A stretch of 64,000 nt of DNA, taken from NCBI GenBank assembly GCA_002104905.1, contig MCFE01000198.1, forward strand, positions 70,308 to 134,307, given 5' to 3'. A program made the translations under genes and the position numbers. Positions within the stretch are counted from its first letter, which is position 1, and every line of letters begins with the position of its first letter. The DNA comes from Basidiobolus meristosporus CBS 931.73 (taxonomy: Eukaryota > Fungi > Basidiobolomycota). Shown one piece after another: positions 1 through 63,520 of this stretch. The notes under the pieces are model-generated. The model was not told the origin of the DNA. It ran no database searches and saw only the letters and a program-made list of their open reading frames with translations.

Positions 1-1413
1 CAATCTAGCCAAATCGTTAGAGGCGGCTTGAGAGGAGCTGCGGTCTTGCTCCAAAGACTTGATCTTGTTTTCCATGGCCAAAAGAGCTTGATCTTTTTGG
101 GAAACGATTTGAGACATGCGTTGCTGTCCGAATCCAAGCTCGTGGGTGAGTTGGTCAATAGCGGTCTTGGCCTTACCAAGCTCGCTGATAAGGCTGGACT
201 CGCGAGATTGGGCCTCTCTGATTTGACGGGTAAGGGATTCTTGCTCGGCATAATGGGTCTTGCGCTCAATGTTGAATTGCTCGATTTGCTGCTGGAGGTT
301 GGCCTGTTGCTCACGGTGGGTGGCGTTGGCTTCATCGATATCGTAGCTAGCGGCTTGGAGAGTCTTGACGTTCTCCTTTTCAACCGTCAATTGCTTGAAG
401 AGAACTTGGTTGGTGTAGTTCAATGAATCAACCTTGGTTTCAAGAGTCTTGATCTTCTTCTCGTAGACCTTCTTGTCAATCTGTTGATCATTCAACTGCT
501 CACTAACTTCATCAAACTCCTTTTGGAGTTGGTTCTGAAGGGTCTTCAAGGAATCATTCTTCTTGGACAAGTTCTTGATGGTCTCCTCCTTGTCCTCCAA
601 GGATTGACGAAGCTCTTCCAACTCCTTGGAAGAGACCTCAGGCTCAGCGTGAGTGGCGCTAATAGATTCAATGGTGGGCTGCTCGACAGGAATCTCCTTG
701 GTGGCTTCCTGAACTTGGGCGGCGGTCACCTCCTCAACAACAACAGCGTTCTTGTTCTTCTTCTTCTTGGCCTTCTTCTCAGATACAGGAGCAGGGGTCT
801 GCTCAGGCTCTTCCTTCTTGATCGGCTCGGGGGCGGCGACCTCAGGAACAGCTTCAACAGCAGCAACAGCAGTTTGTTCAACTACTTCAGCCACAGGAGC
901 GGCTGGAGTCTCGGGAACAACAGGCTTCTGCTTCTTGGACTTGGAACCCTTGGGCTTCTTAGGCTCCTTCTTTTCAAAAAGAACTGGACCACCGTTGACC
1001 TCAAGAGCAGCATAAGGATTGGCCGAAGCGACAGAGGCGTCAATACCATATTCTGGCTCTTCCTCTTCCTCCTCCTCGACTTCTACGACCTCTTCAACAA
1101 CCTTTTGGACCACCTTGGGGGGTGCGGCGGCTTTAGCGGCCTTAGCCTTGGAGCGCTTGGTAGCGTTTCCAGCTGCCTTGGGTTGAGCCTTGGCACCGTT
1201 AACCTTAGGTTGAACCTTAGGAGTGGTGGCCTTGGACTTCTTGGCAGGCTTCTTCTTGGTCTCGAGCTCTACTTCCTTCAGAAGAGCAGCTTGAGCCTCG
1301 GTGTGATCGACCGCAGGCTTGCTACCAACAAAGTTATAGTAGATGTAAACACTGGAAGTGGAAACTACACCCAGGACAACCAAAAGGGTAGTAAGATTCG
1401 AGAAAGCATCCAT
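1..1413 (-). CDS. N-terminally membrane-anchored, Lys/Glu-rich coiled-coil protein (3'-partial; kinectin/p180-like architecture)
   Basis: ATG at 1413 opens a stop-free minus-strand frame of 471 codons that runs off the window, which is why it is absent from the ORF track. Translation: MDAFSNLTTLLVVLGVVSTSSVYIYYNFVGSKPAVDH (hydrophobic segment), then KKKPAKKSKATTPKVQPK (Lys-rich), an E/P/A/V-rich linker, and heptad-like SSKELEELRQSLEDKEETIKNLSKKNDSLKTLQNQLQKEFDEV. Strong AAG/GAG codon bias. Confidence 0.85.
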   Translation of the reverse strand, partial: MDAFSNLTTLLVVLGVVSTSSVYIYYNFVGSKPAVDHTEAQAALLKEVELETKKKPAKKSKATTPKVQPKVNGAKAQPKAAGNATKRSKAKAAKAAAPPKVVQKVVEEVVEVEEEEEEEPEYGIDASVASANPYAALEVNGGPVLFEKKEPKKPKGSKSKKQKPVVPETPAAPVAEVVEQTAVAAVEAVPEVAAPEPIKKEEPEQTPAPVSEKKAKKKKNKNAVVVEEVTAAQVQEATKEIPVEQPTIESISATHAEPEVSSKELEELRQSLEDKEETIKNLSKKNDSLKTLQNQLQKEFDEVSEQLNDQQIDKKVYEKKIKTLETKVDSLNYTNQVLFKQLTVEKENVKTLQAASYDIDEANATHREQQANLQQQIEQFNIERKTHYAEQESLTRQIREAQSRESSLISELGKAKTAIDQLTHELGFGQQRMSQIVSQKDQALLAMENKIKSLEQDRSSSQAASNDLARL

Positions 1414-1964
1414 GATAGAGAGTCAAATAACCGGGTTTCAAAGAGAGGATACAGACAACGATAAACGACTGGTCAGAGAAGTGAAAGTCGGTAATAACAC
1501 ACTGCGACCAGCTCACCAACTGCTCAGTAATAACTATCCAAGCGGTTGGAGAAAGCCAGGGTATTATTCAACAATGTCCAGGGTTGGTTTAGCAGAACAA
1601 AAAATTCTGGCCAAACACATCTCTGATCAAGCGCTCCTCGGGGAAAGGACCAAGGATCACTCCAATATTTAATCAGCATCCACGCATATTCGTCTCCTTA
1701 CCAGGCATTAACCATTGCCAATTGCCATAAATCCATTCATAAATGACCCCATATACGCACAATCACTCTCCCCGAGCTTGGTAGGATTTACTCGGATCTC
1801 GCCTGTCCACCAATCGTGTGTGGTGGCAATAATCCAGAGCTTACAGAAGGATTGAGAATAATTTGTGATAATAACTGCCAATCAGCGCATGCATTGGCAG
1901 GTAGCGCTCTTCAAGATTTCGTCGAATCAGCACCAGCCAGCTGTAGATGATTCATTGCCGTCTC

Positions 1965-2003
1965 CCCCAACCCCAACCCTAACCCTAACCCTAGCCCTAA
2001 CCC
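1965..2003 (+). repeat. Interstitial telomere-like (CCCTAA)n tract in the divergent promoter
   Basis: CCCCAA CCCCAA CCCTAA CCCTAA CCCTAG CCCTAA CCC read directly from the sequence. Confidence 0.85.
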
Positions 2004-2321
2004 GCCATCACAGCCCAGAGTAGACGCATAGATAAATTCACTTCGAAGAAAGGTTGACCTCTTTGGCAATTATTAGATCCGTGACTTGAAACCAATCAAA
2101 TGGGAAATTGAATGTTTTGATTTCTCGCGGCTGCCCATAGACCTTCCACTCCCGATGATGCTTGGAGATTGTAAACAACAATAAAAGAATTTTCGTCATC
2201 AAAACACCCACCAAATTGGCCTTAAAGTGGTACCCCCAGTGCTGCTACCTCTTGACTAGCTTACTCCTTAGACTTCCCTTCCATCTGTATTATATATTAC
2301 TCACAACCGGGACTTGCAACC

Positions 2322-4682
2322 ATGGTTATGTACGTTAAGAAGCGTGATGGCAGACAGGAGCGGGTTGCTTTTGACAAGATCACCGCCCGAGTGAACAAAC
2401 TGTGCTACGGACTAGACACCAACTACATCGACTCCGCCGCTGTGGCCCAGCGCGTTATTTCTGGCGTTTATGAGGGTGTTACAACTCAGGAGCTGGACAA
2501 CCTTGCTGCCGAAACCGCCGCCTATATGACCACAAAGCACCCCGACTATGCTATTTTGGCCGCACGTATCGCCATATCAAACCTTCATAAGGAGACCAAG
2601 AAGCAGTTCTCCGCTGTCATGCATGACCTGTATCACTACGTCAATCCCAAAAACGAGAAGCCTTCTCCCAAAATCGCCAAAGAGACCTATGAGATCATCA
2701 TGAAGAATGCGGAGCGTCTGGACTCGGCCATCATCTACGACAGAGATTTCAACTTCAATTACTTCGGTTTCAAGACTCTTGAACGCTCTTACCTACTGAA
2801 ACTGGACAACCAGGTCGCCGAGAGACCACAACACATGGTCATGAGAGTGGCCGTTGGGATCCACGGCGAGGATATCGATGCTGCCATCGAGACATACAAC
2901 TACATGTCCGAGAAGTACTTCACTCATGCCTCGCCAACCCTGTTCAACGCCGGCACCCCAGTCCCCCAGATGAGCAGTTGCTTCCTGGTTTCCATGAAGG
3001 AAGACTCGATCGATGGGATCTACGACACACTGAAGACCTGTGCCCTCATCTCCAAATCTGCCGGTGGCATTGGGCTGAACGTGCACAAGATCCGTGCCTC
3101 CGGATCCTACATTGCCGGCACCAACGGTACCTCCAACGGGCTGATCCCCATGCTTCGAGTATTCAACAACACCGCCAGATACGTCGACCAAGGTGGCAAC
3201 AAGCGACCCGGCGCCTTTGCCATCTACCTCGAGCCATGGCACTATGACATCCTGGACTTCTTGGACTTGCGTAAGAACACCGGCAAGGAGGAATCCAGAG
3301 CCCGTGATCTCTTCTACGCGTTGTGGATCTCCGACCTGTTCATGAAGCGTGTCGAGAAGGATGAGGACTGGAGCCTGTTCTGCCCCGCGGAGGCCCCTGG
3401 CCTCGAGGATTGCTGGGGTGAAGAGTTCGAGAAGCTGTACATTTCGTACGAACGCAAGGGGCTCGCCCGCAAGACCATCAAGGCCCAGAAGCTGTGGTAC
3501 GCCATCCTGGATGCCCAGATCGAGACCGGCAACCCATTCATGCTCTACAAAGACTCGTGCAACCGCAAGTCGAACCAACAGAACCTCGGTACCATCAAGT
3601 CCAGCAATCTCTGCTGCGAGATCGTGGAGTACTCCAGCCCCGAAGAGGTGGCTGTCTGCAATCTTGCCAGTTTGGCGCTCCCCACGTTCGTTACTTCCAA
3701 GGACCACTACAACTTCGAGGAGCTCCACAAGGTCACCAAGATCCTTACCAAGAATCTCAACAAGGTGATCGATGTCAACTACTACCCGATCGAGGAGGCT
3801 CGCCGCTCCAACATGCGCCACCGACCGGTCGGTCTAGGCGTTCAGGGACTCGCCGATGCCTTCATCAAGATGCGCCTACCCTTCGAGTCCGCAGGTGCGA
3901 TCGAGCTGAACAAGAAGATCTTCGAAACCATCTACCACGCTGCGTTGGAAGCATCCTGCGAGCTTGCTCAGCGCGATGGCCCCTACGAGACGTATGAAGG
4001 ATCTCCCGTTTCCCAGGGAATCTTGCAGTACGACATGTGGGGTGTCACCCCTACCGATCTGTGGGACTGGGACGAGCTGAAGGCGAAGATCGCCAAGCAC
4101 GGCGTGCGCAACTCCCTCCTGGTAGCCCCCATGCCCACCGCATCCACCTCGCAGATCCTTGGCTTCAACGAGTGTTTCGAGCCCTACACATCGAACATCT
4201 ACACCCGCAGAGTGTTGGCCGGCGAATTCCAGATCGTCAACCCATGGCTGCTTAAAGACCTAGTTGAGCTAGGTCTCTGGAACGACAGCCTGAAGAACCG
4301 AATCATCGCGGACAGCGGCTCCATTCAGAATATACCCTCGATTCCCAAGGAGCTCAAGGAGCTTTACAAGACCGTGTGGGAGATCAAGCAGAAGGTGATC
4401 GTCGATATGGCTGCCGACAGAGGGGCGTTCATTGACCAGTCCCAGTCACTCAACATCTTCATCGCCGAGCCCTCCTACCCCAAGCTCACCTCCATGCACT
4501 TCTACGGTTGGAAGAAGGGCCTCAAGACTGGCATGTACTACTTGAGAACCCGGCCCGCCGCCGATGCCATCCAGTTCACCGTGGACCAGCTGGCGTTGAA
4601 GATGGAGGGGAATGCGATCGAGGACGCCAAGCTACAATGCTCTATCGACAACAAAGATGCGTGTATGATGTGTAGCGGATAG
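2322..4682 (+). CDS. RNR1: Ribonucleoside-diphosphate reductase large subunit (class Ia), intronless, 786 aa
   Basis: ATP cone ([17 protein letters not shown]), [48 protein letters not shown] and C-terminal CMMC. The true start may be the second Met at 2328. Confidence 0.98.
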
Positions 4683-4818
4683 ATATTTATTTCCATGTAA
4701 TCAAGAGAATCAGGAGGAATGTACCAATAAATTATCCCGAATTTTGTCATCAATGTCCGCGAAACCTCGATATTTTACTGAGAGGGTGCCAATAGAATTT
4801 TGTCATGGATGCAGTCGG

Positions 4819-6131
4819 CTACATCTCCTCCAGGATGGTGATCCCAACCATCAGGCCAATGCCGACGAACATCGCGACAATCTGCCAGAAGGACTCCAGG
4901 ATCTTCTTGCCGACGGTGGTGGCCTCCGAGTCGTCCGAAAGGAGCTCGGGTATCACCCCCACGGTTGCGATGTAGATGAACCCACCCGCGGTGGCGGGGA
5001 TGATCATCTCACTGGCGGTGACGATGGAGTCGCTTTCGCCACCTAGCACTCCCTTCAATATAGGAATCATATCTGGATTCCTGGTGGCCTCCTCGATGAT
5101 CACTCCTACCACTGTGCCCATGAACGCGCCGATGGCGGTCACGAATTGCGCACCCAGCGCCCGGCTTCTGCTGAATCCGGACTGTATCAGAATAGCGTAG
5201 TCGCCCACTTCGTGGGGAATCTCGTGGAAGAACACCGCGGCGAAGGTCGAGATCCCGATGGCAGGGGAGGTGTAGAACGATGCGGCGATGGCCAGTCCGT
5301 CGGTGAAGTTGTGGGTCATATCTGCAATCAAATTAAGGTAGGCTGATAGGTTGACCTTCTGGGAAGTGGCCTCTTGCGCCACGGGCTGTTCCTGCTCAGT
5401 GTCGGTTTTCTTGCGTTGTCGTAGTTGTGCGTCGGTCCCGACCTCGCTCACCGAGCTGCTCTTGCCTTCGATTTTTTCTTGAGGGCTGTGGGAGTGGGAG
5501 TGGAGTGGGAGTGGGAATGCCCATCTCCGCCACTGGCAATTCGCATAAATTTGTCCAACAGGAAGAAAAATAGGAAGCCCCCAAATATTCCCAAGCCGAC
5601 GTACAGGTTACGCCATTTGAGCGTTTCCTCGTTGAGCTTGGTCACCTCGCCATGCTCGCCCAAAAACACCTGCGGAAGCAGGTGCAAGAAGACATCCCCC
5701 AACAAACCACCAACAGCGAAGCTCACGAGAATGTTCAGGCTACTTGGGCGTATGTTGGGCGGGACGAAAAACAAAATGAAGTTCGGAAACAGGGAGATGT
5801 AGGCGGTAGCCAAGAAGGAGGAGATCATCGGGCTCTCCGAGAACAGGAAGCTGAAGGTAGACTTCCCTTCGGTTCTCGTGCTCGCCTCATCCGGAGACTT
5901 GCGGTTCAGGCCAAAGAATTTATGAAAGGGGCAATCGGCTGGATCTCCGGCTGGGATGTCCCCGTGGTACTTCTTGGCCAGCTCCTCAGGACTTCCCTGA
6001 AATAAACTTTCCTCTGACGGACCTGGCTTAGCCCTGTGTCCGGCACATAATATGGCACCAAAGACTACTATCAAAAGTAGAAGGACCAAGAGTTTGCTTC
6101 TTCTGTTTTTCAAAGACCCACCAGATTGCAT
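4819..6131 (-). CDS. YKE4: ZIP (SLC39) zinc transporter, LIV-1/ZIP7-YKE4 type; 1-nt frameshift near 5502
   Basis: N-half (ORF 5448-6245, likely start MQSGG at 6131): hydrophobic leader, GGLLGDVFLHLLP, GDGHSHSHS. C-half (ORF 4819-5451): ADMTHNFTDGLAIAASF, FHEIPHEVGDYAIL, ATAGGFIYIA. Restoring one C in the (CACTCC)n run joins the halves. Confidence 0.9.
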
Positions 6132-14733: not shown

Positions 14734-15793
14734 TGTAGTGGGGTCACAGTGACACCCACTGACAGATGTGCTCATTCCCATATTTTCTACTTCCTTATAT
14801 TTCTACTACATTTATTTTAGATTTATCCTATTTGTCTTACCTGATCAGTACTATCCCATAAGCCGGTTGACTATCACACCTGCTTACCTTATTGCATAAG
14901 TTATCCCTCACTTTATGTAAGATTACTAGCTGTAAGTGCTTCTATATTAGGCAAGTACCCACGCCAGTACCTGTGACACATGATCAACCCATATCATCAT
15001 CCCTACCATTTCCATACTATATATGGGATCCCTATGTTACACAGGTTTCAGAGTACAGATTCCTGATTGGTGGGATGTGCTGTGCCTCTTGGAACCCTCT
15101 GGCACTTACTTAGAACATTCTGATGTCATTAAGATTTCTATTGATATCCAGAACCTTCTGGAACACCATGATTAGTAATCACTTAGCCAGTGAGAAAAGT
15201 ATATAAGGGAGTCTATCCCTCAACAATAAATCACCATCCCTTTTATCAGTATACCAACTTGTTGATTAGTGTGATCACTGCTACCTGCTGCTACCTGAAC
15301 TTCCAACCCCAGATCACAGGACACTCCCAGGAAACAGTGCTGACAGTCAACTGACCTTGGAGGCACAACTTGTGAGGAATACTCCAAGTAGGTATCTTTT
15401 ACTATATTTGATTCTTTCCCAAGTTTGTTCTTGCACAGGCAAAGATACTTTTCTGTCTTTGTAACTATTGACCACAGCTGCATTCTTATCAAGTCCCTGC
15501 TGGTGGGGTTTACAGTTGTTTTGACTTTGGAAGCTTTAGTACATTGTCATCTCAAAGGATGCTGAACCCAGCACATACTTTTGTTAAGACACCAACTAAG
15601 TTGGGGATTGTAGCTCAATAGTTTTCTCTTGACAAGCTTGTGGCTTTATTCCCCATCACATTAGATTAGAGACAGTACCCAAGTATTCCTAGCAAGCTTT
15701 TGCCAGAAGTTATCACACCCAGTGAACACCCCACACACAAAACACTTGAGAAGTGTTGGACATATCTCTCCCTTGGACTTATACACCACCACA
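14734..15793 (+). mobile_element. ~1.06-kb solo LTR (gypsy-type, 4-bp TSD) nested in copia B gag
   Basis: TGTAGTGGGG..CACCACCACA. TSD GTGC at 14730-14733 and 15794-15797. Reverse-complement homologue at 55964-57034. Confidence 0.88.
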
Positions 15794-16642: not shown

Positions 16643-16853
16643 AGACTTGTTCCATCATTCCAGCTGATCATAGTGCCCAAGAGTGCCATAGCATGCCAGA
16701 TGGTGCTTGATTATGCCACAGAGTGCCAGATGGTGCCATACAGTGCCAATTTGGGATCAAAATTGACATGCATATGACCCTAAAATATCAAATTAATAGC
16801 AAAATATACAGCACTTTCTGGCACTATGATCAATGGTACAATGGAACAAGTCT
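16643..16853. mobile_element. 211-bp PHIS/Harbinger-family MITE inside the 5' LTR of copia B
   Basis: TIR AGACTTGTTCCAT / ATGGAACAAGTCT; TSD ATA at 16640-16642 and 16854-16856. Removing it restores the LTR sequence GTGAAAATATTCTAAG. Confidence 0.9.
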
Positions 16854-18675
16854 ATATTCTAAGTAAATCCCAACAAGGAAATTGGTCAGTATTCTCTAGG
16901 ATTTGAAGGTAATGATCTAAGTGACTAAGTTAGGTGAATATTTAGGTGGAATTACAATTTTTACAACAGAAAGAGGCCTTTGGGATATTGTCATGGGAGA
17001 AGAATGCCCTCCTAAAATTGTGAGGGAGGAAGCCTTAAAGTACCAGAAGAAAGAACAAAGTGCCTTAAGCTGCACACCCCTTTATGTTAAAGACAAATTG
17101 CAAATTCAATGCTCAAGAGCAAAAACAGCAAAGAATGCCTGGAAGGCACTAGAAGACACCTACCAGTCATGTTCAGCTGCCAAGAGAATGTATTTTAGAC
17201 AAATATTCTTTACTACAAAGATGCTGCCAGGAGAAGAAATGAAAAATCTAATTACCAGATTTACCCTGCTGGTGGATCAGATGGAATTTGTGGGCATGCC
17301 AGCTACTGATGGGAATGTGATAGTAAACATCCTGAATAGCCTGACAGACAGGTTTCAGGGCCTTGTAGCCTGCAAAAGGAGAGGGCACACATCAAACCAG
17401 TGCCTGAAAAAGAGAGATAATAAGCAGAAAAAGCCTGAATATGGAAATGCTGCAACAGCTGAGGAAAGACTAATCATATCTGCACTAAATATGACCATAA
17501 ACAGGGATTCTCAGACGTGGTATATTGACTCTGCAGCATCTCAACACTTTACACACCAAAAAGAACTTTTTACCCAATATCAAGAAATTCTAATTAAGAA
17601 GGTTTTCATGGGTGATGACAGAACACTTGATACAGTGGGAGAAGGAACTATCAAAGCAAGCCTTGAAAGCAGTGAAGGAAGCCATACACTGACCTTGAAA
17701 GAAGTACTCTATGTACCAGAAATAGCCAAGAACCTGCTATCTATAAGCAAGGTAGCAGCAGAAGGAGTCAGTTCTAGCTTTGACAATTCTGGATGCAGGA
17801 TCACTGATCAAAATGAGGCCCATATTGCTCTGGGTATCAGAGATCAGAATCTGTATAGGTTGATATATATTCCATCATATCTGAAAGCCAATATAAGTAA
17901 CTCAAATGAAGAAACACCAATGCTTTGGCACAGGAGATTTGGACACATCAATTTTGATTATTTGTGCAAAATGATTAAAGATCAGCTAATTTTCAGAGTA
18001 AACACTGATTCCCTAGCTAATTTGGAGCTCTGTGAAGCCTGCATATATGGGAAACAAGCCAGACAACCATTCAAGAGCTCTTGGTTAATTAAAAATAGGA
18101 AAAAAATAGATCTGATTCACTCAGGTCTGTGTGGACCTATGCAAAATTTCTACTTAGATGAGATGAAATATATAATCCCTCTTATTTATGATTATACAAG
18201 ATACACATGGGTCTATTTCATGGAGAGAAAGGAAGAAGCTTGTCTAAGTTCAGCAAGTTTAAAGCCATATTGGAGAAAGAAACTAATGAAAAAATTAAAA
18301 AAATATGCATTGACAATGGTGGAGAATATACATCAAAACTCTTCATCCACTTCTGCAAAATTCACGGAATAAAGCAAGAGACTAATGTACCATACTCCCT
18401 GCAGCAAAATGGAGTAGCAGAATGTGCAAACAGATGAATAAATGATATGGTAAGATCTACAATTCATTTTTAAAAATTATCCTATGACATCTGGGTGGAA
18501 TCAGTTACCACAGGGGTATAACTTAATATAGGAGCTATAGCAGAATACTTTATGATTCTACTCCATTTGAAGCATAGTATGGATACAGCCCAAGTGCAGA
18601 ATATCTAAGAATATTTAGGTGTACAACATATGCTAAGAAAACTCCCAGAAATCAGTCAAAATTTGAGCCAAAAAG

Positions 18676-25252: not shown

Positions 25253-25986
25253 AGAGTTATTCTGTTGGATAGTGCCATATTGAGCCATGAGTACCAAATG
25301 ATGCCATAGTGTGCCAGAGAGGCCAATTGAGCCTCTACCTGGCCACAGAGTGTGAAACATAGCTCCGCATCTTCATGCAAAGCAGCCCCTTTGTTTCACC
25401 CATTGTGTTGGAGAAAATCCATTTTTTGACCTTTTTTTTTAGATCAATGTTGCGCAGGATGTGTTAGAGCACAAGCAGATTGAAGATACGCATCTGGTAC
25501 TCAATACCCAGGGCACTCTGAATCTAGCTCCTGTAGCTTGTATCATGTCACAAAAATGAATGGCACTATCTTGGTCCACTGGTACTATCTGGCACTATAT
25601 TTAAATATTAGCCCTAAAGTAAGATCTATACAAAGCACTTATAGTGCCAGATAGTACCAGTAGACCAAGATAGTGCCATTCATTTTTGTGACATGATACA
25701 AGCTACAGGAGCTAGATTCAGAGTGCCATGGGTATTGAGTACCAGATGCATATCTTCAGTTCTCCTGTGCTCTTACACATCCTGAGTTACATTGATCCAC
25801 AAAAAAAGGTCAAAAAATGGATTTTCTCTTGTGCAATGGGTGAAACACAGGGGCTGCTTTACATGTAGATGCAGAGCTATGTTTCACACTCTGTGGCCAA
25901 GTATAGGCTCACTTGACCTCTCCGGCACACTATGGCATCATTTGGCACTCATGGCTCAATGTTGCACTATCCAACAGAACAGGTCT
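25253..25986. mobile_element. Fold-back PHIS-family MITE (347-bp inverted arms, 40-bp spacer) nested in CACTA copy 1
   Basis: Arms 25253-25599 and 25640-25986 are imperfect reverse complements. TSD AGA at 25250-25252 and 25987-25989. The corresponding site in copy 2 (~33345) is empty. Confidence 0.9.
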
Positions 25987-30000: not shown

Positions 30001-33000
30001 AAGGTGACAAAGATGGCCAGGTGCCAATATAGAAGTATCAACTGGCTGGCAAGAGAATGTTGGTACTGTAGTGACCAATCAATGGTCAAATATGACTTGT
30101 GTGGCAAAATGCTGGCTGTGATCCTTGTAATACTTCCTATGCTGTCTGCATGCTTTGTGGCTGAGAGGCTTGCCACAATAGCCACATGGCCTTTTTTCTC
30201 TTCTCTAATGGCATTGAGTCAAAGTAGTTTTGTCCATGGAGCAAATGGTTTGACCTTCAACAATGTGATGCTATTATATCACTTTTTGGTCAATACTCAT
30301 GTTAATTTAAGACAGTCTTGTATTTGAGATATTAGACTTGTTCCATTGGATTATGGCACATAGAGCCGTGAGTGCCAAATGATGCCATAGTATGCCAGGG
30401 AGGCCAGGTAAGCCTATACTTGGCCACAGAGTGTAGGCATAGCTCTTCACCTTCATGGAAAGCAGCCCCTTTGTTTCACCCAGCATGTTGGAGAAAATCC
30501 ATTTTTTGACCTTTTTTTGGGATCAATGTTGTGCAGGATGTGTAAGAGCACAGAAGGACTGAAGAAATGCATCTGGTACTCAATACATATGGCACTCTGA
30601 ATCTAGCTCCTGTGGGTTGTATCATGTTACAAAAATGCATTGCACTATCTTGGTCCACTGGTACTATCTGGTGCTATAAGTACTTTGTATAGATCTTACT
30701 TAGTGCTAATATTTAAATATAGTGCCAGATAGTACCAGTGGACCAAGATAGTGCCATGCATTTTTGTGAAATGATACAACCTACAGGAGCTAGATTCAGA
30801 GTGCCATGGGTGTTGGGTACCAGGTGCATGTCTTCAATCCTTTTGTGTGCTCACTCACCATGCACAACACTGATCCAAAAAAAAGGTTTAAAAAGAATTT
30901 TGTCCAGTACAATGAGTGAAACACAGGGCTGCTTTGCATGACAATGCAGAGCTATGTTTCAGACTCTGTGACCAAGCATAGGCTCACTTGGCCTCCCTGG
31001 CATAATATGGCATCATTTGGCACTCATGTCTCAATGTGGCACTATCCAAAGGAACAAGTCTATTGCACCTACATGAATGTTAGATTCAATGATGACCTGC
31101 CATAATAAGCATTACAAATAAAGTTGTGGCACCATACACACAAGCATATGTAACACTATTTCCCCTTTGGTTTTACTCACTTCCATGTCTATGCTGCCAA
31201 AAAATAAAGCAACGCCATCTGGTTCCCAACCAAACCCCACTGCTGAAAGCAGCAGAAGAATGGTTGGACAACAGCTTGCTTTACATTCAGTGCAGAAGCA
31301 GGGCTACATCCCAAAAAGGCCATGTTCAAAGTGCGCCTACTGAACATAATAATGCGGACTCCTCAGGCTCTCAGTCAAGTAGGCAATTGAGAATCTCTAC
31401 AGTGCCACAAGCTGACTGTTATGCTCAGGCAGATGAAAATGTAGCAAATGCAGTACCCTTGGTTAATAACCAACAAGTAGTCATCATAACATCACCACCA
31501 CCCATATTATCAAGTTTATTGTCAGCTCATACTAAAGCATTAATGAAGCAATTAGGTGCAGTGGCTGATAGGATAGTTGCAATGGCCCAGAGAAATCAGA
31601 AAATAGTTCAGATACAGGATGAGCAGATAATATGTGTAGAGCAATCAATATCCCAGGTGGAGAAACCAGTATCTTTGCTGCAAAGCAGGAACTCAAGTAG
31701 CTCAATGCCACAGCCAGGAGTTGAGCCATTTCCCAATGTAACAGCAGAGGAACACCATACAGTTTTTGAAGCATAACAACAGTGACCAAAGATAAAGCCC
31801 ACAGAAAGCCTATCACAGTATGGGAGGGAGACAATGTGGTGTTTATACCAAAGCCTAAAAATTAACAGACATTGAAGATCTGTGAAGCTGTTGAGTGCAA
31901 TAATGAAGAGTGGGCTAATATACAAGAGGCTGTCAGAAGTCTAGCATGCCATCACCTTAAGGCTGGCATACCATGGGACCATCAGGAACTCAAGGCCAAG
32001 CAGAATACACTTGACTTGTTCCATGAGCATTATGCTGGATTCAAACAGGCAAATGGATTTTTAGCCAGCATTGGTATGCTAAGAAAGTATCTTAAGAATA
32101 GCAGAGACTATCAAAGACAGAAGAACAAGGGTGCCATGGCTAAAAACCAGCAGCTTCCTCAAGAGCCTGTTACAAGCAGGGCCAAAGCTCCAGACAAGCA
32201 TCAAAGAGACATCAGGTAGCTGGAAGAGTGCCAATTAGGGACAAGCAGGCAGATACAGATGCACCAGCACACCATTTATTAAGGATAAAGTGTAGTACCA
32301 CTCAAGAAGCACCCAGTCAAAGTAGCAGTGAAGGACCTGGCAGTGATAAAAACTAGCCACTTTTACAGGAGCCTGTTGCAACTATGGTTAAGAGCTCAAA
32401 ACTAGCGGAAAAGAAATGTCAGGTTGCCAGAAGAGTGCCAGCAAGGGGCAAGCAGGCCAAAGCAGATGCATCAGAGCAGAATTTATCAAGGAGAAAGCAC
32501 AGTTCATTACAAAAAGCACTCAGATAAAGTAGCAGTGAAAGACCTGGCGGTGATAAAGGAAAAGGTAAACGGAAAAATGTCTACTCAAGCCTGAGACAGG
32601 GAAGCATGCAAAAGAAACTGCAGTTCTTGCTAATTAATGCCGCAAGCCTGGAACAGATTGAATCCCACCATAGCTAAGAAGAATTACCAACAAGAAAACA
32701 GCTGTTTTCACAAGAGTTGAAAGCACCACCAGTTGAGCTACAGTCCAGCAAGGTAGAACAGTTTGCAGAAAAAGGCAACTTGCCTGCCATAGCCTCCACA
32801 TTCTCCATTGTTGACAGAGTGGAGACCCCACTGACAGACAAGCTTACAATGCCAAGAGCTTGAGAGACTATCACAATGCCTTCAGTGGAATTTTAGAACA
32901 TTAATAGGCACACCAAGAGGTTGCAGCACTTCTTCTACAGCAGTGCTCAAGAAAACTCACTTGAAAATTGCAAGGATTTGTTGCAAAGACCGGCAGATAT

Positions 33001-33571
33001 GGTGCTAGACCTTGCAGTGCTGGCTGAAGACTGGGATGTCTGGGAACCAGTGAATGAACAGTGGTTCCTGTCAAAGTTGTGTAACCGGAGTGTTACAGCA
33101 GAAATACTAATTGAGTGGTAGATTTTAATGGAGTTACTTGTTGAGTGTGGAGTTAGGTTTAATGTTAGTGTAGGGAATAGGTACATGTATACATCAATAT
33201 AATTGGCAATTGAGATACAACCAAAGTTTCAATGAAAATAAATCAATTTGTATGCATGGAAGGTAAGAGAAATAGCTGAGTCAGGCAGTAAGGAGTGTGA
33301 AAAAGAGGCAATAGCCAATCAATGCACACAATTGTAGGAGGTGATAGAGTGTTTGGGATTGGAAAGTAAGCAAATTGGCAGGGAACCAATCAAAAGCCAC
33401 TTAAGCATTATTGTGATGAAAAATTTTGACCAAGTTTTTGTGAAATCTGGGGTGCAATTATTTTTCAATGGTCTCTGGATAGTGTCCTGACAGGATCAGT
33501 ACCTCTTAGTCACAGGACTTTAGCTTTGTGATGGCCTTTTGACAGAATCATTACAATAATTTTTCATAGGG
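27099..33571. mobile_element. CACTA-like copy 2, both ends present
   Basis: Left end TCCTATGAGAAATAA, right end TTTTTCATAGGG followed by CTAG GAGAAC of copia RT. Colinear with copy 1 (transposase on minus, ORF2 on plus). Confidence 0.85.
30334..31061. mobile_element. Second fold-back PHIS-family MITE, in the central spacer of CACTA copy 2
   Basis: AGACTTGTTCC..GGAACAAGTCT; TSD ATT at 30331-30333 and 31062-31064. Arms 30334-30678 and 30718-31061; the spacer is the reverse complement of that in the 25253 copy. Confidence 0.9.
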
Positions 33572-53830: not shown

Positions 53831-55963
53831 TTCTGATATAATCCATCATATTACTCAGCCAGCAGGGATGAAGATCAATGACTATGAAGAAGACCTACAG
53901 GCCTATATATTTGAGAACTGCAAGTTTGACCTTGTACTTGGAAAACCTGGCTATTTTGTTGTAATCCATCAATCAACTGGAGAACCCATGCTACTCAGGT
54001 TCAGAAGGACAACAAGACCTATGAGCTATTACCTGCCAGACTGGATTTCAGCTTGGTCAATTGCAGTGTGTGTGAAGTGAGCTTAGCAAGACACAGTTCT
54101 GTAGAGCACTTAGCAAAGGCACCCTAATGTTCCTTATGGCAGTATTACTGGAGGATTCCTCTACTTCAGTACCCCAGAAGGTCCAGACTCTTTTCAAGGA
54201 ATATTCAGATGTATTTCCAGATGAGCTTGTAAGCCTACCATGGGTCAGAGATGTATATCATGCCATTGACACAGGAGATAGCCCTCCAGTTAGTGAGATA
54301 CCTTACAGAAAAAGTCCATTGCAATTGGAAGAGATGAGAGACAAATAGATCAGTTATTGGTGTAAGGATATATCAGACCCAGCAAGTCACCTTGGGGAGC
54401 ACCAGTACTTTTTGTGAAGAGGAAGGAGGGAGCACTTAGAATGGGCATTGACTGCAGAGCCCTTGACTCAGTTACTGTGAAAAATAAGTACCCCATACCT
54501 TGGATTGATGAGCTTTTAGACCAACTCAACCAAGCCACTATATTCAGCAAGATTAACCTTATGTCAGGATACAACCAGATTAGGGTGAAGCCAGAAGACA
54601 TCCCTAAGGCAGCATTCAGGACAAGATATGGACATTACAAGTACTTAGTTATGCATTTTGGCCTCACCAATGCCCCTGCAACATTCATGACCCTGATGAA
54701 GACTGTCTTCCAGGAGTACTTAGACAAGTTGATGATAATCTACCTAGATGACATATTGATATACAGCAAGACAGAAGAGGATCACATGGTGCACATTGAA
54801 AAGGTCTTGAAGAAGCTAAGAGAGTACAAACCATACAGCAAGCCAGCCAAGTGTGAATTCTGCAGGGAACACTTTGAATATCTGGAACTCATAGTGACTA
54901 GCACAGGAGTGACCTTAGATCCTAAGAAGGTTGAAGTTATCAAGAATCTGAAGCAGTCCCATAGCATATCAGAACTCAGATCATTCCTTTGAATGGTTTC
55001 CTGTTACTGGAGATTTGTCAAGTTCTTTGCAAGTATTGCAGCCTGTTTAACTGATATCCTCAAGAAAGACAATACCTACAAGTGGGACATAGCTTGTGAG
55101 ACTGCCTTCCAGATGCTCAAGAATGAACTTGTTAGGCTGCCAAGTTTAAGAATACCTGAATTCAGAAAAGAGTTTACTCTGTGCACAGATGCTTCAGATT
55201 ATGTAATTGGTGGAGTGTTGAGCCAAGAACACAAGGGAAAGGACTACCCAGTTGCCTTTGAATACAAGAAACTGAACTCAGCAGAACAAAACTATCCAGT
55301 ACCTGAGAAGGAGATGCTTGCTATAATACACTGCTTGAAGACATGGAGTTGCTATATTGAAGGAGTCAAATGCACTGTGTAGACTGATCATGCCTCCCAT
55401 AAGTATATATTGACTCATAAGGTACTCTCTAGAAGAATGATAAGATGGAATGAATACATTCAGCAATTCAACTTGGAGATTGTCTACTGCCCTGGAAAAA
55501 CAACATGGTTGCTGGTTCCTTATCAAGATTAGAACAAGCTGCACAACTCTACTTGGTGCATGAATCAGATTGGCCTAGCCTATTACCAAAGGACTTGGAG
55601 GACCAAGCCATTCCTAATGAGGTGGATGAGGAGATCAAGAAGATTATCCAGGATGAAGCCAGCAAATTTGTGGTACAGGATGAAACACTCTACCAAGTTG
55701 TTAATGGAAGCCCTATTGCATATTGCCCTCATATTGCTTGCCTGGATTTAATACATAAGACTTGTTCCATTGTACTGTGCCAGGGTGTGTGGTGCAATCC
55801 ACGGTTGTAAAGAACAATTGGGCGCAATATTATAGCTACCAGTAGGCAGCATTGTTCTTGGACAATTTTGCACTATGTGGGACAATCTTGCACACTATGG
55901 CACAATCTGACACAATGAGGTTGGCACGGATGACTGCGCCAACTTGTAATGTTTGCATCACGT

Positions 55964-57034
55964 TGTGGTGGTGTATAAGTCCAAGGGAGAGATACGTCCA
56001 ACACTTCTCAAGTGTTTTGTGTGTGGGGTGTTCACTGGGTGCGATAACCTCTGGCAAAAGCTTGCTAGGAATACTTGGGTTCTGTTTCTAATCTAATGTG
56101 AAGGGGAATAAAGCCACAAGCTTGTCAAGGGAAAACTATTGAGCTACAATCCCCAACTTAGTTGGTGTCTTAACAAAAGTATGTGCTGGGTTCAGCGTCC
56201 TTTGAGATGACAATGTACTAAAGCTTCCAAAGTCAAAACAACTGTAAACTCCACCAGCAGGGACTTGATAAGAATGCAGCTTTGGTCAATAGTTACAAAG
56301 ACAGAAAAGTATCTTTGCCTGTACAAGAACAAACTTGGGAAAGAATCAAATATAATAAAAGATACCTACTCTGAGTATTCCTCACAAGTAGTGCCTCCAA
56401 GGTCAGTTGGCTGTCAGCGCGGTTTCCTGGGAGTGTCCTGTGGTCTAGGGTTGGAAGTTCAGGTAGCAGCAGGTAGCAGTGATCACACTAATCAACAAGT
56501 TGGTATATTGATAAAAGGGATGATGATTTATTGTTGAGGGATAGCCTCCCTTATATACTTTTCTCACTGGCTAAGTGATTACTAATCATGGTGTTCCAGA
56601 AGGTTCCGGAGATCAATAGAAATCTTAATGACATCAGAATGACCTAAGAATGTTCTAAGTAGGTGCCGGAAGGTTCTAAGAGGCACAGCACATCCAACCA
56701 ATCAGGAATCAGTATTCTGAAATCTGTGTAACATGGGGATACCATATATGGTATGGAAATGGCAGGGATGGTGACACAGGCTGATCATGTGTCACGGGTA
56801 CTGGCGCGGGTACTTGCCTAATATAGAAGTACTTATAGCTAGTAATCTTACATAAAGTGAGGGTTAACTTATGCAATAAGGTAAGCAGGTGTGATAGTCA
56901 ACCGGCTTATGGGATAGTACTGATTGGGTAAGACAAATGGGATAAAACTAAAATAAGTGTAGTAGAGATATAGGGAAGTAGAAAATAAGGGAATGAGCAC
57001 ATCTGTCAGTGGGTGTCACTGTCACCCCACTACA
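55964..57034 (-). mobile_element. 1.07-kb solo LTR nested in the PHIS element
   Basis: TSD ACGT at 55960-55963 and 57035-57038; reverse complement of 14734-15793. Confidence 0.9.
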
Positions 57035-57573
57035 ACGTGCGCAATTGGATACCGCTATTATGGCAGGTAAAATCCGGTATTTGGATATGTTTCTTTAATG
57101 TAAATGGAAATAAATGTGTATCACTATAAACTACACTGATACTCACCATTTTGGTTACCATCACTCCAATTGGACGGTATCTCAGTGATTAATTGGTCCA
57201 GAAGTAACCTGAAGCTGGCAGCCCCTAATTGGCTCATTGACTACTAAACAATCTACCTGATTCACCATCAAATATCCCATTTTGCCCATTGAGCTAGTAA
57301 ATCTCTGATCCTGGTGATTGGTCAAGGCGTCATAGCTAGCACGCAAGCAATTGGGTAGGTGCAAAACAGATCCAATAGCTGCACTGGTATTACAGATGAT
57401 GTATATATATGCAGGGTGCTTATTTATAGGGGTTCTGTCTCAAATGTGAGACAACCTTGATATTACTTATATCAAAAATTTGATGATCACTGATTTGCAA
57501 TGGCTTAATTCAGATAGCAAAAAAAATGGGTTGTAGGGATCATTACAAATAATAGCAATTCAAAGCAATTGCA

Positions 57574-58836
57574 TCATCTTCTCCTGGGTTTTTTTCTCAC
57601 AGGGATTACTACTGAAGCATTTGGTAGTGACTTGCTTTGCACACCTATACTACTTCCTGGCTGACTATCATCTTGGCTACTTGTGTATTTGTAGTCAGTA
57701 TTTTGCCTCCTAGTTGATGAGTGCAATACTGCAGCTTGGCCATGCTGAATTGCTCCAACTGAACCAACTGAACCAGCCTGGAGTGCCACATGCTGACACG
57801 TTCTTTTACTTGCCAAGGGCTCTGGTGATTGAGGCACTTCATGTTGGTCATCATCAGTCAGTTCACCAAAAGTAACTTGCTGATGGTCAGACAAAACAGC
57901 ATGTGCAGGCGCAACTTGACGCATTGAGATGGCCCTTGGCTGAGTTCAATGTGATGCTGCATGTTGACGCAACTTGGTCTGCTCCAATGAACTTGTGTCT
58001 AAATGAGCAGTTTGGCAAGTTCTGGTAGTTTTGCTCTGAAGCACATGCATTGACCCAATGCGCATTGACTCAATGCACGTTGACTCAATGCGGGTTGTTC
58101 TGGTAAAGGGTGTTGGTGTAGTCTGGACTGACATGCGCTGGCATGCTGTGGTTGCAAGAGATGGTAAGGAATCCAGCAAGGCATGCTGGCACAATCTGGA
58201 CAATGTTGCTTGCGGTCTGTATTCTTCCTCCTGAAGCTCACCATCTGATTCCTCAAGGTATTCACTTACCCTGTGTTTGATACTTTGGAGCTGTTGCCTG
58301 GATGAGACCTGTGTATATTGCTCTTGGAAGCCACTTAGCTCTACTAATATATCATGTGGTACAGTAGTCATATGAGGCAAAAACCCATTCAAAATCTCTT
58401 TGGTTCCCAAAGTTGAGGCACAAATGGACACGTCCGGCCTGTACTGTGCAAATTGCACACAAAATTGTTCCCATGCGGCTTCTTCATCAAATTCCTTCAC
58501 TCTGAGCTCATTCTTGATTTCAATACTTGTCTTGTTATATTTCTTCTTACATACATTGGCTGGCATCTTGATGTAAAACTCATGCCACAGCTTTCTACTC
58601 AAATTCTTCCATCTTTGTTGACTCACTGGGGTATCTAGTTCTGCTAGATTAATCAGTAGTGCCCAAATATTTGTATGAAGGCTCATCATAGACACTTGGG
58701 CTATACTAAAATCATTTGGCAAGAACTTGAACAGATCCAACATTGACTTTTCTGGTCTGGACCGCGCTTGTGAGCTGGGGGATGGGTTTTGTCTGGGTTG
58801 TACTAAAGATGAGTTGAGACTTGGTATGGGGACCAT
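57574..58836 (-). pseudogene. PHIS accessory gene with a putative Myb/SANT-like domain; one in-frame TGA at 57946-57948
   Basis: ORFs 57946-58836 and 57574-57924 are in the same frame (421 codons in total). The segment RWKNLSRKLWHEFYIKMPANVCKKKYNK resembles trihelix/SANT motifs, and the C-terminus RKKPRRR is NLS-like. The domain call is by pattern only. Confidence 0.7.
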
Positions 58837-59195
58837 AGCAACAGATTTGGATACTTATACAGCAGTATATTGGCATAAACCTGGACTTATATGAAATATA
58901 TATGAAAACTGAAGTGATTGTTGAATTTTCCATATATTATGCATGATGCATCTCAGATCATGTTGACACAGACCAGATCACATCAATTGCAGATTTCCTA
59001 TTTGATTAAAGACCTATGAGTAAAGCATTAATAAAAGTACCAAGGCATTGTTTGCAGATAATTTTTGCAACATAATGATGGGATACATGGTAATTGATGG
59101 AGATTTAATCATAATGCATTAAAAATCAGATAAATAATGTAGATTGCACCAAATCAATTTAAACCACCTCCATACAATCATCCACCAATTTGAAT

Positions 59196-60077
59196 ATGAC
59201 TTGCTCATCTGAATGGTCTTTTCTCATCAATCCCATCACTACCACTGGATTTCCTTTTGACACACTAGAGGGGATCTATTCCAAGTACTATGGACCATCT
59301 ACCTCAATCTACTCAAGGAGATCCCTTGTTAAGCTTTTCTGCTATTACAAGAACTATTGCCCTACAAGCTTTCATCCCAACATCCATGGCAACAAAAGTC
59401 CTAGAAGCTTTCAATCCCAGCTGACAGCAATGGAGAACCACCTTGCTGAGTGTATGAATGACTTAGAGCAAGCTTGGAATACTAGGTTCAGAAGCTCCAA
59501 TAGACTTCCATATCCCTGAGTGTTCAGCAACAGGTTCCATATCCGGAGTATCTTGGATGCCTTCCCAGTGAGGATTAACAGACCTTCTAGAGGACAGGGG
59601 CACTTTTATTCCAGCAAGCACAAGGCACACTGTGTGAAGTTTCATGCACTGTCTGACATTGAGGGTAGCATCATCTGGTTTAGTGGGCCATTTGCTGGAA
59701 GTAGGCATGACAAAGCACTCTGGGTAGAGAATCATCCTGAATTCAGTAGAGGAGAGAAATGTATGGCAGACTTAGCCTATATAGGAGAGGATTGTCACAG
59801 ATTAGGTTGTATTACAGCTGATAGGAAGCCAAGGAATGGTGTGCTCAGCAGGAAGCAGCAGCTCTACAATGAGATATTTAATCATTTCAGAGTGAGGGTA
59901 GAGCACACACTTGGATATCTGAAGAGATTCAGCATACTGGCAGGTAAATACAGAGGAAAGTCATATATAGGAGAAAACGGCAGAATAGGTAAAATAGTTA
60001 AGATACCTATTAATGCACAGTATGCTCATACAAGAAGACATCCACTGAGAGAAATGTGTCTGGAGCATTATGAATAG
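59196..60077 (+). pseudogene. DDE_Tnp_4 (Harbinger/IS5-like) transposase; one in-frame TGA at 59517-59519
   Basis: SILDAFPVRINRP (D), HFYSSKHKAHCVK, SGPFAGSRHD, MADLAY (D) and NHFRVRVEHTLGYLKRF (E). The two ORF-track pieces are in frame. Confidence 0.88.
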
Positions 60078-61115
60078 TAAATAAAGCAAGGAAAGCACTA
60101 TTTGGAGCAACATAAGTAAGATTGAGTAAAATTACCAGTAACTGTATCATACCACTGGCATCATGGTAGAAGATATAGTGCCAGATAGTGCTGTAGGGTG
60201 CAGATCAATCCGGCACTATCAACAGGCTGGCACTATGTGGCACTATCCAACAGATCAAGTCTATAAGCTTCACAATGGATATGCACATCTTGAAACTGAA
60301 GGAACCTCTAGCCTTGAGAAAACCAGAGCATGGTGGCCCAGAATGAAACAAGACATTGAGAAGCTAGTGAAAACATGCCCAAATGGCCAAATCAACCAAG
60401 GTCAACCACAGTGAACTGCTGAACTCTTTTGCTTAGAGCCTGTAAGACCATTTGAAAGATGGGGAATTGACTTATTGGAAGACTGCCAACTACCAGGAAA
60501 TGCAACTGTTGGATCCTAGTAGCAATTGACCATGCAACTAAATGGCAAGTGGCTAATGCAGTACCTGTAGCCAGTGAAAAGAAGTTGCAAGTTTCATCTA
60601 CCATAAGATCCTTATGAAGTTTGGGTGCCCAATAGAGATTCCATCCAAAAGAGGAGCAAACTTTATAGCAAAGGCATTGCAAGCTTACCTGGAAATGCTG
60701 CACATCATACACTTGAAAACCTTGGCATATCACCCTAGAGCTAATAGAGTCACTGAGCAATTTAATGGGCTATTTGGAAAAATGCTGACCAAGTATGCAA
60801 ATGGAGCTATCAGTAGATGGGATGAGTATATAGACCAAGCACACTTTGCATGCAGAGTAAAAATACACAACACCACCCAACAATTGCCATTTTACATAGT
60901 GTATGGATGTGAACCAAGGATTCCAGGAGATCTCACACAACCAAAGCTTACAGAAACCTTAGAAGATGAACTTGGTCAGCCAAGTAGACACCCGCAGCTG
61001 GAACAGAGTTGTCAAGAAGCACAGGCCAAAGTATCTCAAATGCAGAAAAGATGAATCAGAGAATTGATACAACTATATCACCAGAATCATTGACAGTTGG
61101 ATGGAAGGCTCCTGG

Positions 61116-63520
61116 ATGAAGAATTAAGAATATAAAGTGCCAATAAGCAGGAAGAAGAAAATGCTGCAATAAGCAATGGGAACCAACAAAGGAGGTACCC
61201 AAGACCCTACAAAGACAATAGCAACCTGTTTTGCAACTACTGCAAAAGAAAGAACACACATCAGACTGGTGTCTCAAAAAGAGAGAAAATCAGCAAAAGA
61301 AGCCTGAATATGGAAATACTGCAACAACTGAAGATAGACTATTCATATCTGCACTGAGTATGACCACAAACAAGGATTCTCACATGTGGTACACTGACTC
61401 TGGGGCATCTCAACACTTTACACTCCAAAAAGAACTTTTTACCCACTATCAAGAAATTCCAATCTAGAAGGTTTTCATGGGTGATGATAGAACACTTGAT
61501 GCAGTGGGAGAATGAACTATCCTAGTAGACCCTAGAAGCAGTGAAGGAAGCCATACACTGACCTCTAAAGAGGTACTGTATGTACCAGAAATAGCAAGAA
61601 CCTACTATCTGTAAGCAAGGCCACAGCAGAGGGACTTAGTTTCAGCTTTGACAATTCTGGATGAAGGATCACTGATCAAAATGGAGCCCATATTGCTTTG
61701 GGTATCAGAGATCAGAATATATACAGGTTGACTTATATTCCATCATATCTGGAAGCCAATATAAGTAACTTAAATGAAGAAACACCTATACTTAGGTACA
61801 GGAGATTTGGGCACATCAATTTGGATTATTTGCCCAAAATGATCCAAGATCAGCTATTTTCTGGAGTAAAAATTGATCACCCAGCTAGTTTGGAGCACTT
61901 TGAAGCCTGCATACATGGGAAACAAGCCAGACAACCATTCAAGAGCTCTAGATTAATCAAAACTAAGAAAAAATTAGATCTAGTTCACTCAGATCTGTGA
62001 GGAGTTATGCAAAATTTATCCTTAAGTGGGATGAAGCATTGCATCACTTTTATTGATGATTATGCAAGATACACATGGGTTTACTTCATGGATAGAAAGG
62101 AAGAAGTTCTGTCCAACCTCTGGGAACTTAAAGCCATGGTGGAGAGAGAGACCAGTGAAAAAATCAAGAAAATACTCTCTGACAATGGTGGAGAATATAC
62201 CTCAAAACTCTTCAACCACTGCTGCAAAACTCATGGGATAAAGCAAGAGACTACAGTACCATACTCCCCACAGCAAATGGAGTAGCAGGATTGGCTAACA
62301 GATCAGTAATTGCCATAGCAAGATCTATGTTCCAAGATCAAAATTATCCTATGATTTTAAGCGGAATTGATTTCCACAGCTGTATACCATAAAAGTAGGA
62401 GTTTTATCATAATACTTTGTGATTCTACTCCATTTGAGGCATGGTATGGGTGCAGATCAAGTGCAGAACATCTCAGAATATTTGGGTGTACAGCATATGC
62501 CAAGAAACTGCCCAGCAATCAGTCAAAATACGAGCCAAAAAATGTAAAATGCATATTTTTAGGTTACTGCAATGAGAGTAAAGCATACAGACTCTACAAT
62601 ACCAAAGTAAAGAGGCTAATGAAGGCTAGTGATGTGCTGTTTGATGAAAATTTAAAATTTTCACAAAAAATGACATCAGATGATGACAAAAATCTGATCT
62701 CAAGTCCACCAGTTGTTGGGATTGAACCAGAGCAAAACAATGAAGATTTTTTCACTCCAGAGGACTCTACAACTGTGGTTCAGCCTGAATCAGTGCCCAG
62801 GAATATCCCAGAAGTGATCATTCCAGTATCAAATGCCTGTAGATTTAATCAGAAAAGAAATAGCCCAGATCACTATATCAATGAGGGTACAAACTTAGCC
62901 TATGCCTATTCAGTCCATATTGATGAGCCCCAGACTGTAAAAGAGACCCTAAATATCCCTCAGACAAAGTTTTGGAGATCTACAATGATTGAGGAATATC
63001 AGGCCCTGGTGGAAAATCAAACTTGGGACTTAGTCAAGTCACTAAGCAGCCAAAAATCAATTGGATGCTGATGTGTCTTCAAGACAAAATACAAGGCTGA
63101 TGGTACAATTGAAAGATGTAAAGTAAGACATGTGGCCAAAGGATACTCTCAAACAAAAGGACTTGACTATACTGAGACCTTTGCACTGGAAGCCAGGTTT
63201 AATTCCTTCAGACTAATATTGGCATTTGCAGCCAAATATAAGTTTTTATTCATCATATGAATGTAAAAGCTGCATTTTTGAATGGAGAGCTTGATTAGCA
63301 TGTCTATATGGACCAGCCTGATGGTTTTGTTGACCAAGATAACCCTCTATTTGGTCTGAAAGCTAAAAAAGTCACTATAAGGTCTTAAGCAATACCCAAG
63401 AGCCTGGAATTGCAAGAAAAATTCTTATTTGAAATCTTTGAGTGTCAAAAGGAGTAATGCTGACTATGGTATATACTATAAGCCAGATAGAGCAAATCCA
63501 GTTCTATTAGCTCTATAGTA
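61116..63520 (+). mobile_element. Copia family-1 internal fragment (mid-gag to RT), no 5' LTR
   Basis: CNYCKKKEHTSDWC, WYTDSGAS, FIDDYARYTWVYFM, DNGGEY, NLISSPP and RT start. The left junction is approximate. Confidence 0.85.

Follow-up and report, generated by a model that had tools for sequence, protein, structure and literature searches.

We analysed a 64,000-nucleotide stretch of the fungus Basidiobolus meristosporus CBS 931.73 (contig MCFE01000198.1, positions 70,308 to 134,307 of the forward strand), hereafter the window, for a DNA transposon at positions 55758-60262. This 4505-bp element, which we refer to as the coding element, has imperfect inverted ends starting AGACTTG and a 3-bp ATA target duplication. 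It carries two divergent open reading frames (ORFs), a transposase with a DDE catalytic domain and a long partner ORF, each interrupted by an in-frame TGA, and it shares the window with three miniature inverted-repeat transposable elements (MITEs) (Table 1). The coding element is a decayed, broken member of its family with clear boundaries, and it is probably a two-gene transposon of the PIF/Harbinger (PHIS) superfamily, most resembling the described Pangu group, which is the Harbinger2 of Repbase (Kojima 2025, PMC12730594).

Boundaries and insertion site of the coding element

The two ends of the coding element match at 9 of their first 10 nucleotides and at about 18 of 24. Both start with AGACTTG and have ATA directly outside; the right end, read as its reverse complement, is AGACTTGATCTGTTG, and the terminus sequence of the family is AGACTTGTTCC. 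A first-pass annotation of this DNA had proposed an element at 55758-60262 with inverted termini beginning AGAC and an ATA duplication, and that element is real, although its ends are imperfect. When the two flanks were fused through one ATA, a 133-codon frame with no stop was obtained, the right-hand part of which matches the Pfam family Integrase_H2C2 from profile position 13 (expectation value, E, 4.7e-10). Therefore, the coding element landed in the integrase gene of a long terminal repeat (LTR) retrotransposon and duplicated ATA as it did so. No second copy of this host sequence was found in the window. Alternative boundaries, with ends starting GAC and a TAA/TTA, TA or 5-bp TANTA-like duplication, were tried and rejected, since the flanks contain no such direct repeats and the empty sites described below fix the duplication at 3 bp.

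The coding element is itself interrupted by a solo LTR, which belongs to the same family as a second solo LTR, at 14734-15793; the two share 93.7% identity over 1071 bp, and the second has a GCAC duplication of its own. Subtraction of the nested LTR and 4 bp of duplication leaves 3430 bp (4505 - 1071 - 4), in agreement with the approximately 3.4 kb estimated earlier. Insertion into the retrotransposon integrase gene came first, followed by a hit from an LTR retrotransposon that left its solo LTR behind.

MITEs with the ends of the coding element

Since the three MITEs lie in repeated DNA, paralogous empty sites are present inside the window itself. On these empty paralogues, the sequence flanking each of the three on the left overlaps that on the right by exactly three bases. 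One MITE is 211 bp long, while the other two are fold-back elements that are 86% identical to each other. No further family copies were found in the window beyond these three and the coding element. At its left end, the coding element has the same first 18 nucleotides as one end of the 211-bp MITE; at its right end, it is 86% identical over 35 nucleotides to the ends of the fold-back MITEs. The coding copy and the MITEs also have in common a 17-21-nucleotide block, ATAGTGCCAGATAGTGC, of which 17 nucleotides are identical to the centres of both fold-back elements. In addition, 17 occurrences of the motif WAGTGCC lie in the four family elements (5.1 kb together) and 13 in the remaining 58.9 kb of the window, a 15-fold enrichment.

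Shared ends and a shared subterminal motif are the usual kind of evidence for linking MITEs to a coding family, and as judged from sequence they would link these three to the coding element, as the first-pass annotation had proposed. The three are MITEs by definition, being short and non-coding, bearing the family ends and duplication type, and having inserted as whole units.

The duplications of the four family insertions are ATA, ATA, AGA and ATT, with A as the first base in 4/4. These are the four that had been listed earlier; those of the MITEs are established by the empty sites and that of the coding element by the restored integrase frame. The family cuts its A-N-(A/T) targets with a 3-bp stagger, and a 3-bp duplication therefore flanks each insertion.

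Table 1. Positions of the transposon family and of the parts of its coding element in the window.
Feature	Position	Strand	Evidence or remark
Left target duplication copy, ATA	55755..55757		Single ATA joining the flanks reopens the integrase frame
Left terminal inverted repeat, imperfect, starts AGACTTGTTCCATTG	55758..55781	+	
Nested solo LTR, TG...CA, 55964-57034, 1071 bp, with 4-bp ACGT duplication on both sides	55960..57038		
Partner ORF (ORF2), 420 codons plus stop: 296 codons, TGA at 57946-57948, 123 more open codons	57574..58836	-	
AT-rich spacer between the divergent genes, 359 bp, 31% GC, CpG-free	58837..59195		Position
DDE transposase, 293 codons, in-frame TGA at 59517-59519	59196..60077	+	DDE_Tnp_4, E 6.6e-22; identity to P0002; alignment A1
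Subterminal WAGTGCC repeat cluster, presumed protein-binding sites	60173..60245		15-fold motif density
Right terminal inverted repeat, reverse complement starts AGACTTGATCTGTTGGATAGTGCC	60239..60262	-	
Right target duplication copy, ATA	60263..60265		
211-bp MITE, duplication ATA, GTGCC repeats at 10-bp period	16643..16853		4-5 paralogous empty sites
734-bp fold-back MITE, arms 87.6% identical, duplication AGA	25253..25986		1 paralogous empty site, 33201-33492
728-bp fold-back MITE, arms 81% identical, duplication ATT	30334..31061		3 paralogous empty sites

The transposase

The pieces of the transposase and of the partner ORF on either side of their stops were searched separately. The C-terminal 185 aa of the transposase, which follow the stop, match the Pfam family DDE_Tnp_4 (E 6.6e-22), and the best NCBIfam match of the same piece is the IS5-family model (E 2.8e-12). 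Its catalytic triad, D13, D84 and E128 in the numbering of this piece, is invariant in an alignment with nine homologues (alignment A1). These results uphold the earlier description of a 293-codon DDE transposase with one TGA at 59517. The closest homologue, P0002 (294 aa), is 60% identical over transposase residues 110-293 as aligned with HMMER, and the N-terminal 107 aa of the transposase align with residues 7-108 of P0002 at 52% identity (E 3e-38). Since both pieces align to P0002, they are parts of a single gene of natural length.

Among 1.84 billion representatives searched exhaustively with HMMER, 4 proteins reached E<=1e-30 and 1023 reached E<=0.001; after the 60% match, the next relatives are approximately 40% identical. 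A word-based protein search with the 185-aa piece gave no match. The homologues P0002-P0015 sit on contigs of 1-3 kb. Three related transposases (P0011, P0012 and L002:4812-5924) have a C-terminal tail of approximately 60 extra aa with the conserved pattern TWWA.K...Y......LS.RLVG and no Pfam match; the tail may serve in chromatin targeting.

The partner ORF and the intergenic spacer

The partner ORF runs divergently from the transposase, from 58836 to 57574, and the spacer between them is presumed from this position to act as a bidirectional promoter. The ORF had been described as 421 codons with one TGA at 57946, and we measured 420 codons plus a stop. Whether this TGA interrupts the gene or ends it was considered, as the second ORFs of Pangu elements span 170 to 592 aa (PMC4482050) and the tail past the TGA is of low complexity and has no homologues. 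A gene of naturally 296 codons, with the 123 downstream codons fortuitous and only the transposase broken, is nevertheless improbable: the frame continues exactly in phase past 57946, and 123 open codons at 44% GC would be expected by chance with a probability of approximately 0.002 according to a simple stop-frequency estimate.

Although the first-pass annotation had called the partner gene Myb-like, the searches lent this no support. No match to Pfam was found up to E 10, including Myb, SANT and MADF domains, and none was found among PDB sequences, in the ESM Atlas (with the whole protein or with residues 30-135) or in a word-based search of 5.8 billion proteins with the 296-aa piece, these negatives with respect to Myb/SANT coming from a single orphan sequence. 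A single-sequence AlphaFold model was too poor for a fold search, with a predicted local distance difference test score (pLDDT) of 36.7. Pairwise comparison with the second ORFs of two metagenomic relatives described below, L005 and L009, gave E values of 1.2 and 4.3, respectively. The protein does show a W-x18-W...C-K-K-K-Y spacing, a loose resemblance to Myb/SANT that is suggestive at best.

This spacing bears on the possibility that the coding element is a canonical PIF/Harbinger transposon with a Myb/SANT partner and merely relaxed target choice. Such an element would have the same divergent two-gene layout, and by eye the loosely Myb/SANT-like spacing fits the tryptophan-rich ORF of L009, but the E value of that comparison is the 4.3 given above. 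The partner ORF lacks a detectable Myb, SANT or MADF match in Pfam, PDB or the ESM Atlas and its fold model is unusable, while none of the four duplications is the canonical TWA. Moreover, the phmmer search reached only about 1000 proteins, which would place the transposase remote from the bulk of DDE_Tnp_4. We consider a canonical element very unlikely.

Decay of the coding copy

The TGA in the transposase aligns with Arg109 of P0002, so the original codon was most likely one for arginine. Because 24 of the 25 arginine codons in the transposase ORF are AGA or AGG and the ORF contains only 2 CpGs, a change from AGA to TGA is at least as likely as one from CGA to TGA, and the CGA origin proposed earlier for this stop is doubtful. 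For the partner ORF, where 6 of 26 arginine codons are CGN, codon usage leaves CGA>TGA a plausible origin.

The 185-aa DDE piece also carries four private substitutions (G32S, Y34H, Q42H and K102R) at the 25 columns that are invariant in the nine homologues, three of which (G32S, Y34H and Q42H) fall within the most conserved motif, Y-(N/S)-G-K-Y-K-x-H. The homologues carry 0-3 changes of the same private type, fewer than the coding copy. Since these four changes affect otherwise invariant positions, repair of the two stops may not restore activity, and the earlier estimate that the element is two stops away from an active one appears optimistic.

The CpG observed/expected ratio of the coding element without its LTR is 0.19, compared to 0.00-0.05 for the flanking retrotransposon. 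Within the element it is 0.47 at the left end, 0.22 in the partner ORF, 0.05 in the transposase and 0.00 in the intergenic spacer. The first-pass annotation was correct that the element retains more CpG than its neighbours; its conclusion that the element is therefore probably young is weakened, as the signal comes from the left end and the partner ORF only and the transposase is depleted to the same level as the old neighbouring DNA.

Relatives in metagenomic and bacterial DNA

A two-gene relative of 3434 bp was found in metagenomic DNA (L009:174-3607), with a transposase 29% identical to that of the coding element, 16-nucleotide ends AAGGATTTGGTCATCG and an ATT duplication. Its second ORF, of 154 aa, has a Myb/SANT-like tryptophan spacing and no Pfam match. 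An AT-rich, eukaryote-like contig (L005:1044-5584) shows the same divergent layout, a 272-aa minus-strand ORF and a 286-aa transposase, together with a 21-nucleotide inverted repeat at 153-173 and 3186-3206 and no clean duplication; just outside this repeat lies a 724-aa ORF with a weak JmjC match (E 0.004).

Bacterial-type relatives are also present. Plasmid-borne IS5/IS702-type transposases are approximately 32% identical to the transposase of the window. Forty-nine metagenomic elements resembling insertion sequences (L018-L080; for example L020:3509-4471) are 0.88-1.02 kb long, have ends AGAC(C/T)TCTTGCGAAAC and encode transposases 27-32% identical to it. Their 3-bp flanks are always A-W-T, and the two sides agree in 22/49. 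Since agreement is limited to these 22, the duplication of the insertion-sequence-like elements is not a plain 3 bp; it is probably TA within an AWTAWT target, judging from the flanking sequences.

Placement within the PHIS superfamily

PHIS groups have been defined by their target duplications: TWA for PIF/Harbinger, AT for ISL2EU, none for Spy, CWG for NuwaI, C|TNA|G for NuwaII and ANT for Pangu (Han et al. 2015, PMC4482050). The first-pass annotation had given ANT as the duplication of Pangu, correctly according to this source. Membership of the coding element in the superfamily follows from the DDE_Tnp_4 match with its D-D-E residues and from the AGACTTG ends with an exact 3-bp duplication, within the 0-3 bp of PHIS elements. 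Its earlier description as a two-gene PHIS element with 3-bp duplications other than TWA is therefore borne out. As the four duplications include no TWA, CWG or TNA, the family is neither canonical Harbinger nor Nuwa. The duplication types of ISL2EU (2-bp AT), Spy (none) and PHISTA (TA) are not matched either, because the empty sites show 3 bp.

Filing the family as PHIS and Pangu-like by its described features is partly supported, and three points weigh against this assignment. First, the A-N-T that defines Pangu fits one of the four duplications (ATT), while AGA and the two ATA fail in either orientation, in a sample of four. Second, movement of the MITEs by the proteins of the coding element is putative; what they share with the coding copy is limited to ends of approximately 18-35 nucleotides and the 17-21-nucleotide motif. 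Third, no relatives of the partner ORF were detected, so that its assumed role depends on where it lies in the element.

The first of these points raises the possibility of a separate PHIS lineage with its own non-palindromic A-N-W targets, which would count as a new group rather than as Pangu when classified by duplication as in Han et al. 2015. Three of the four verified duplications end in A instead of T, and the transposase has few close relatives, given the 4 and 1023 proteins retrieved at the two thresholds and the drop to approximately 40% identity after the 60% match. However, a target logo would require more than four insertions, Han et al. list AWT, ATT and ANT variants all within Pangu, the relative L009 has an ATT duplication, and every other feature agrees with the published description of Pangu (PMC4482050). 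We regard a separate lineage as unlikely. It is equally unlikely, in our judgement, that the family with its A-N-W preference forms its own branch between the bacterial AGAC-ended IS5-type elements and Pangu, a seventh PHIS group defined by duplication; if it did, the set of autonomous copy, MITE and fold-back elements could become a transposition system for an early-diverging fungus. Of the two affiliations offered in the first-pass annotation, Pangu-like or a new PHIS lineage, the former is favoured, since all architectural features match the description and the sole deviation, in a sample of four insertions, is the third base of the duplication.

Sequence context of the family

Past its first few kilobases, the window is made up of LTR retrotransposons in a patchwork. 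Other features of the window are an intronless gene for the ribonucleotide reductase large subunit (2322-4682), a Copia-type gag/pre-integrase ORF (16921-18372; Retrotran_gag_2, Pol_BBD and gag_pre-integrs) and a retroviral-polymerase SH3-like fragment (62367-63071). The CpG observed/expected ratio is 0.80 in the gene-rich part (1-6000) and 0.04-0.08 in the repeat-rich part (16000-64000), where TpG/CpA is in excess. This sharp contrast is characteristic of repeat-targeted cytosine methylation and decay.

Proposed mechanism and significance

By analogy with the superfamily, the transposase, probably with assistance from the partner protein, would bind both the WAGTGCC repeats and the ends; it would then excise the element and reinsert it through a staggered cut of 3 bp. 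Intact copies elsewhere in the genome could mobilise in trans those MITEs that retain the ends and the repeats. The coding element reveals no new mechanism. Rather, the window provides a cleanly delimited example of a little-studied PHIS branch, and the point most worth keeping is that A-N-A targets are used by the family alongside A-N-T. These data may be of use for transposable element annotation of this repeat-rich fungal genome and for refining the duplication-based classification of PHIS elements. A large PIF-Harbinger expansion in Basidiobolus genomes has been published at the superfamily level (PMC5751038).

Comparison with known systems

The two fold-back MITEs of approximately 730 bp resemble fold-back MITEs in general, being near-complete inverted repeats (81-88%) that inserted as units with 3-bp duplications. 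There is nothing unusual about them, and internally they show no sequence relationship to the coding copy beyond the ends and the 17-nucleotide motif.

Canonical PIF/Harbinger elements belong to the same superfamily and likewise have a divergent two-gene layout, a 3-bp duplication and Tourist-like MITE derivatives. They differ in their TWA duplication and in their recognisable Myb/SANT/MADF partner, neither of which was detected here. The bacterial IS5 family, including IS702-like elements and an AGAC(C/T)TCTTGC-ended group from metagenomic contigs, likewise has a DDE domain (27-33% identical), ends starting AGAC and A-first, A/T-rich 3-bp flanks; its members differ in being single-gene elements of approximately 0.9 kb with a duplication that is probably TA.

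The closest likeness is to Pangu, as described by Han et al. (PMC4482050). It differs in the third base of the duplication, which is A in 3/4 insertions here and T in the ANT of Pangu, including the AWT of two fungal families in the rust Melampsora. In other respects the correspondence is extensive. Pangu transposases contain a DDE domain only and the second ORF has no known motif, being an orphan in most families; the coding element likewise pairs a DDE_Tnp_4-type transposase that has no other domain with a motif-less second ORF. Pangu ends are 11-40 bp long and start with AG or GG, as do the short AGAC-starting ends found here, and the duplication is likewise 3 bp beginning with A. Without its LTR, the coding element (3430 bp) is close to the mean Pangu length of approximately 3487 bp. 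Pangu transposases adjoin bacterial IS5 in the published tree, and the transposase of the window is likewise similar to those of the bacterial IS5 family. Finally, Pangu also occurs in fungi with MITE derivatives of approximately 200 bp: the 211-bp MITE described here has its counterpart in Pangu_PStr, a 199-bp MITE family in Puccinia striiformis.

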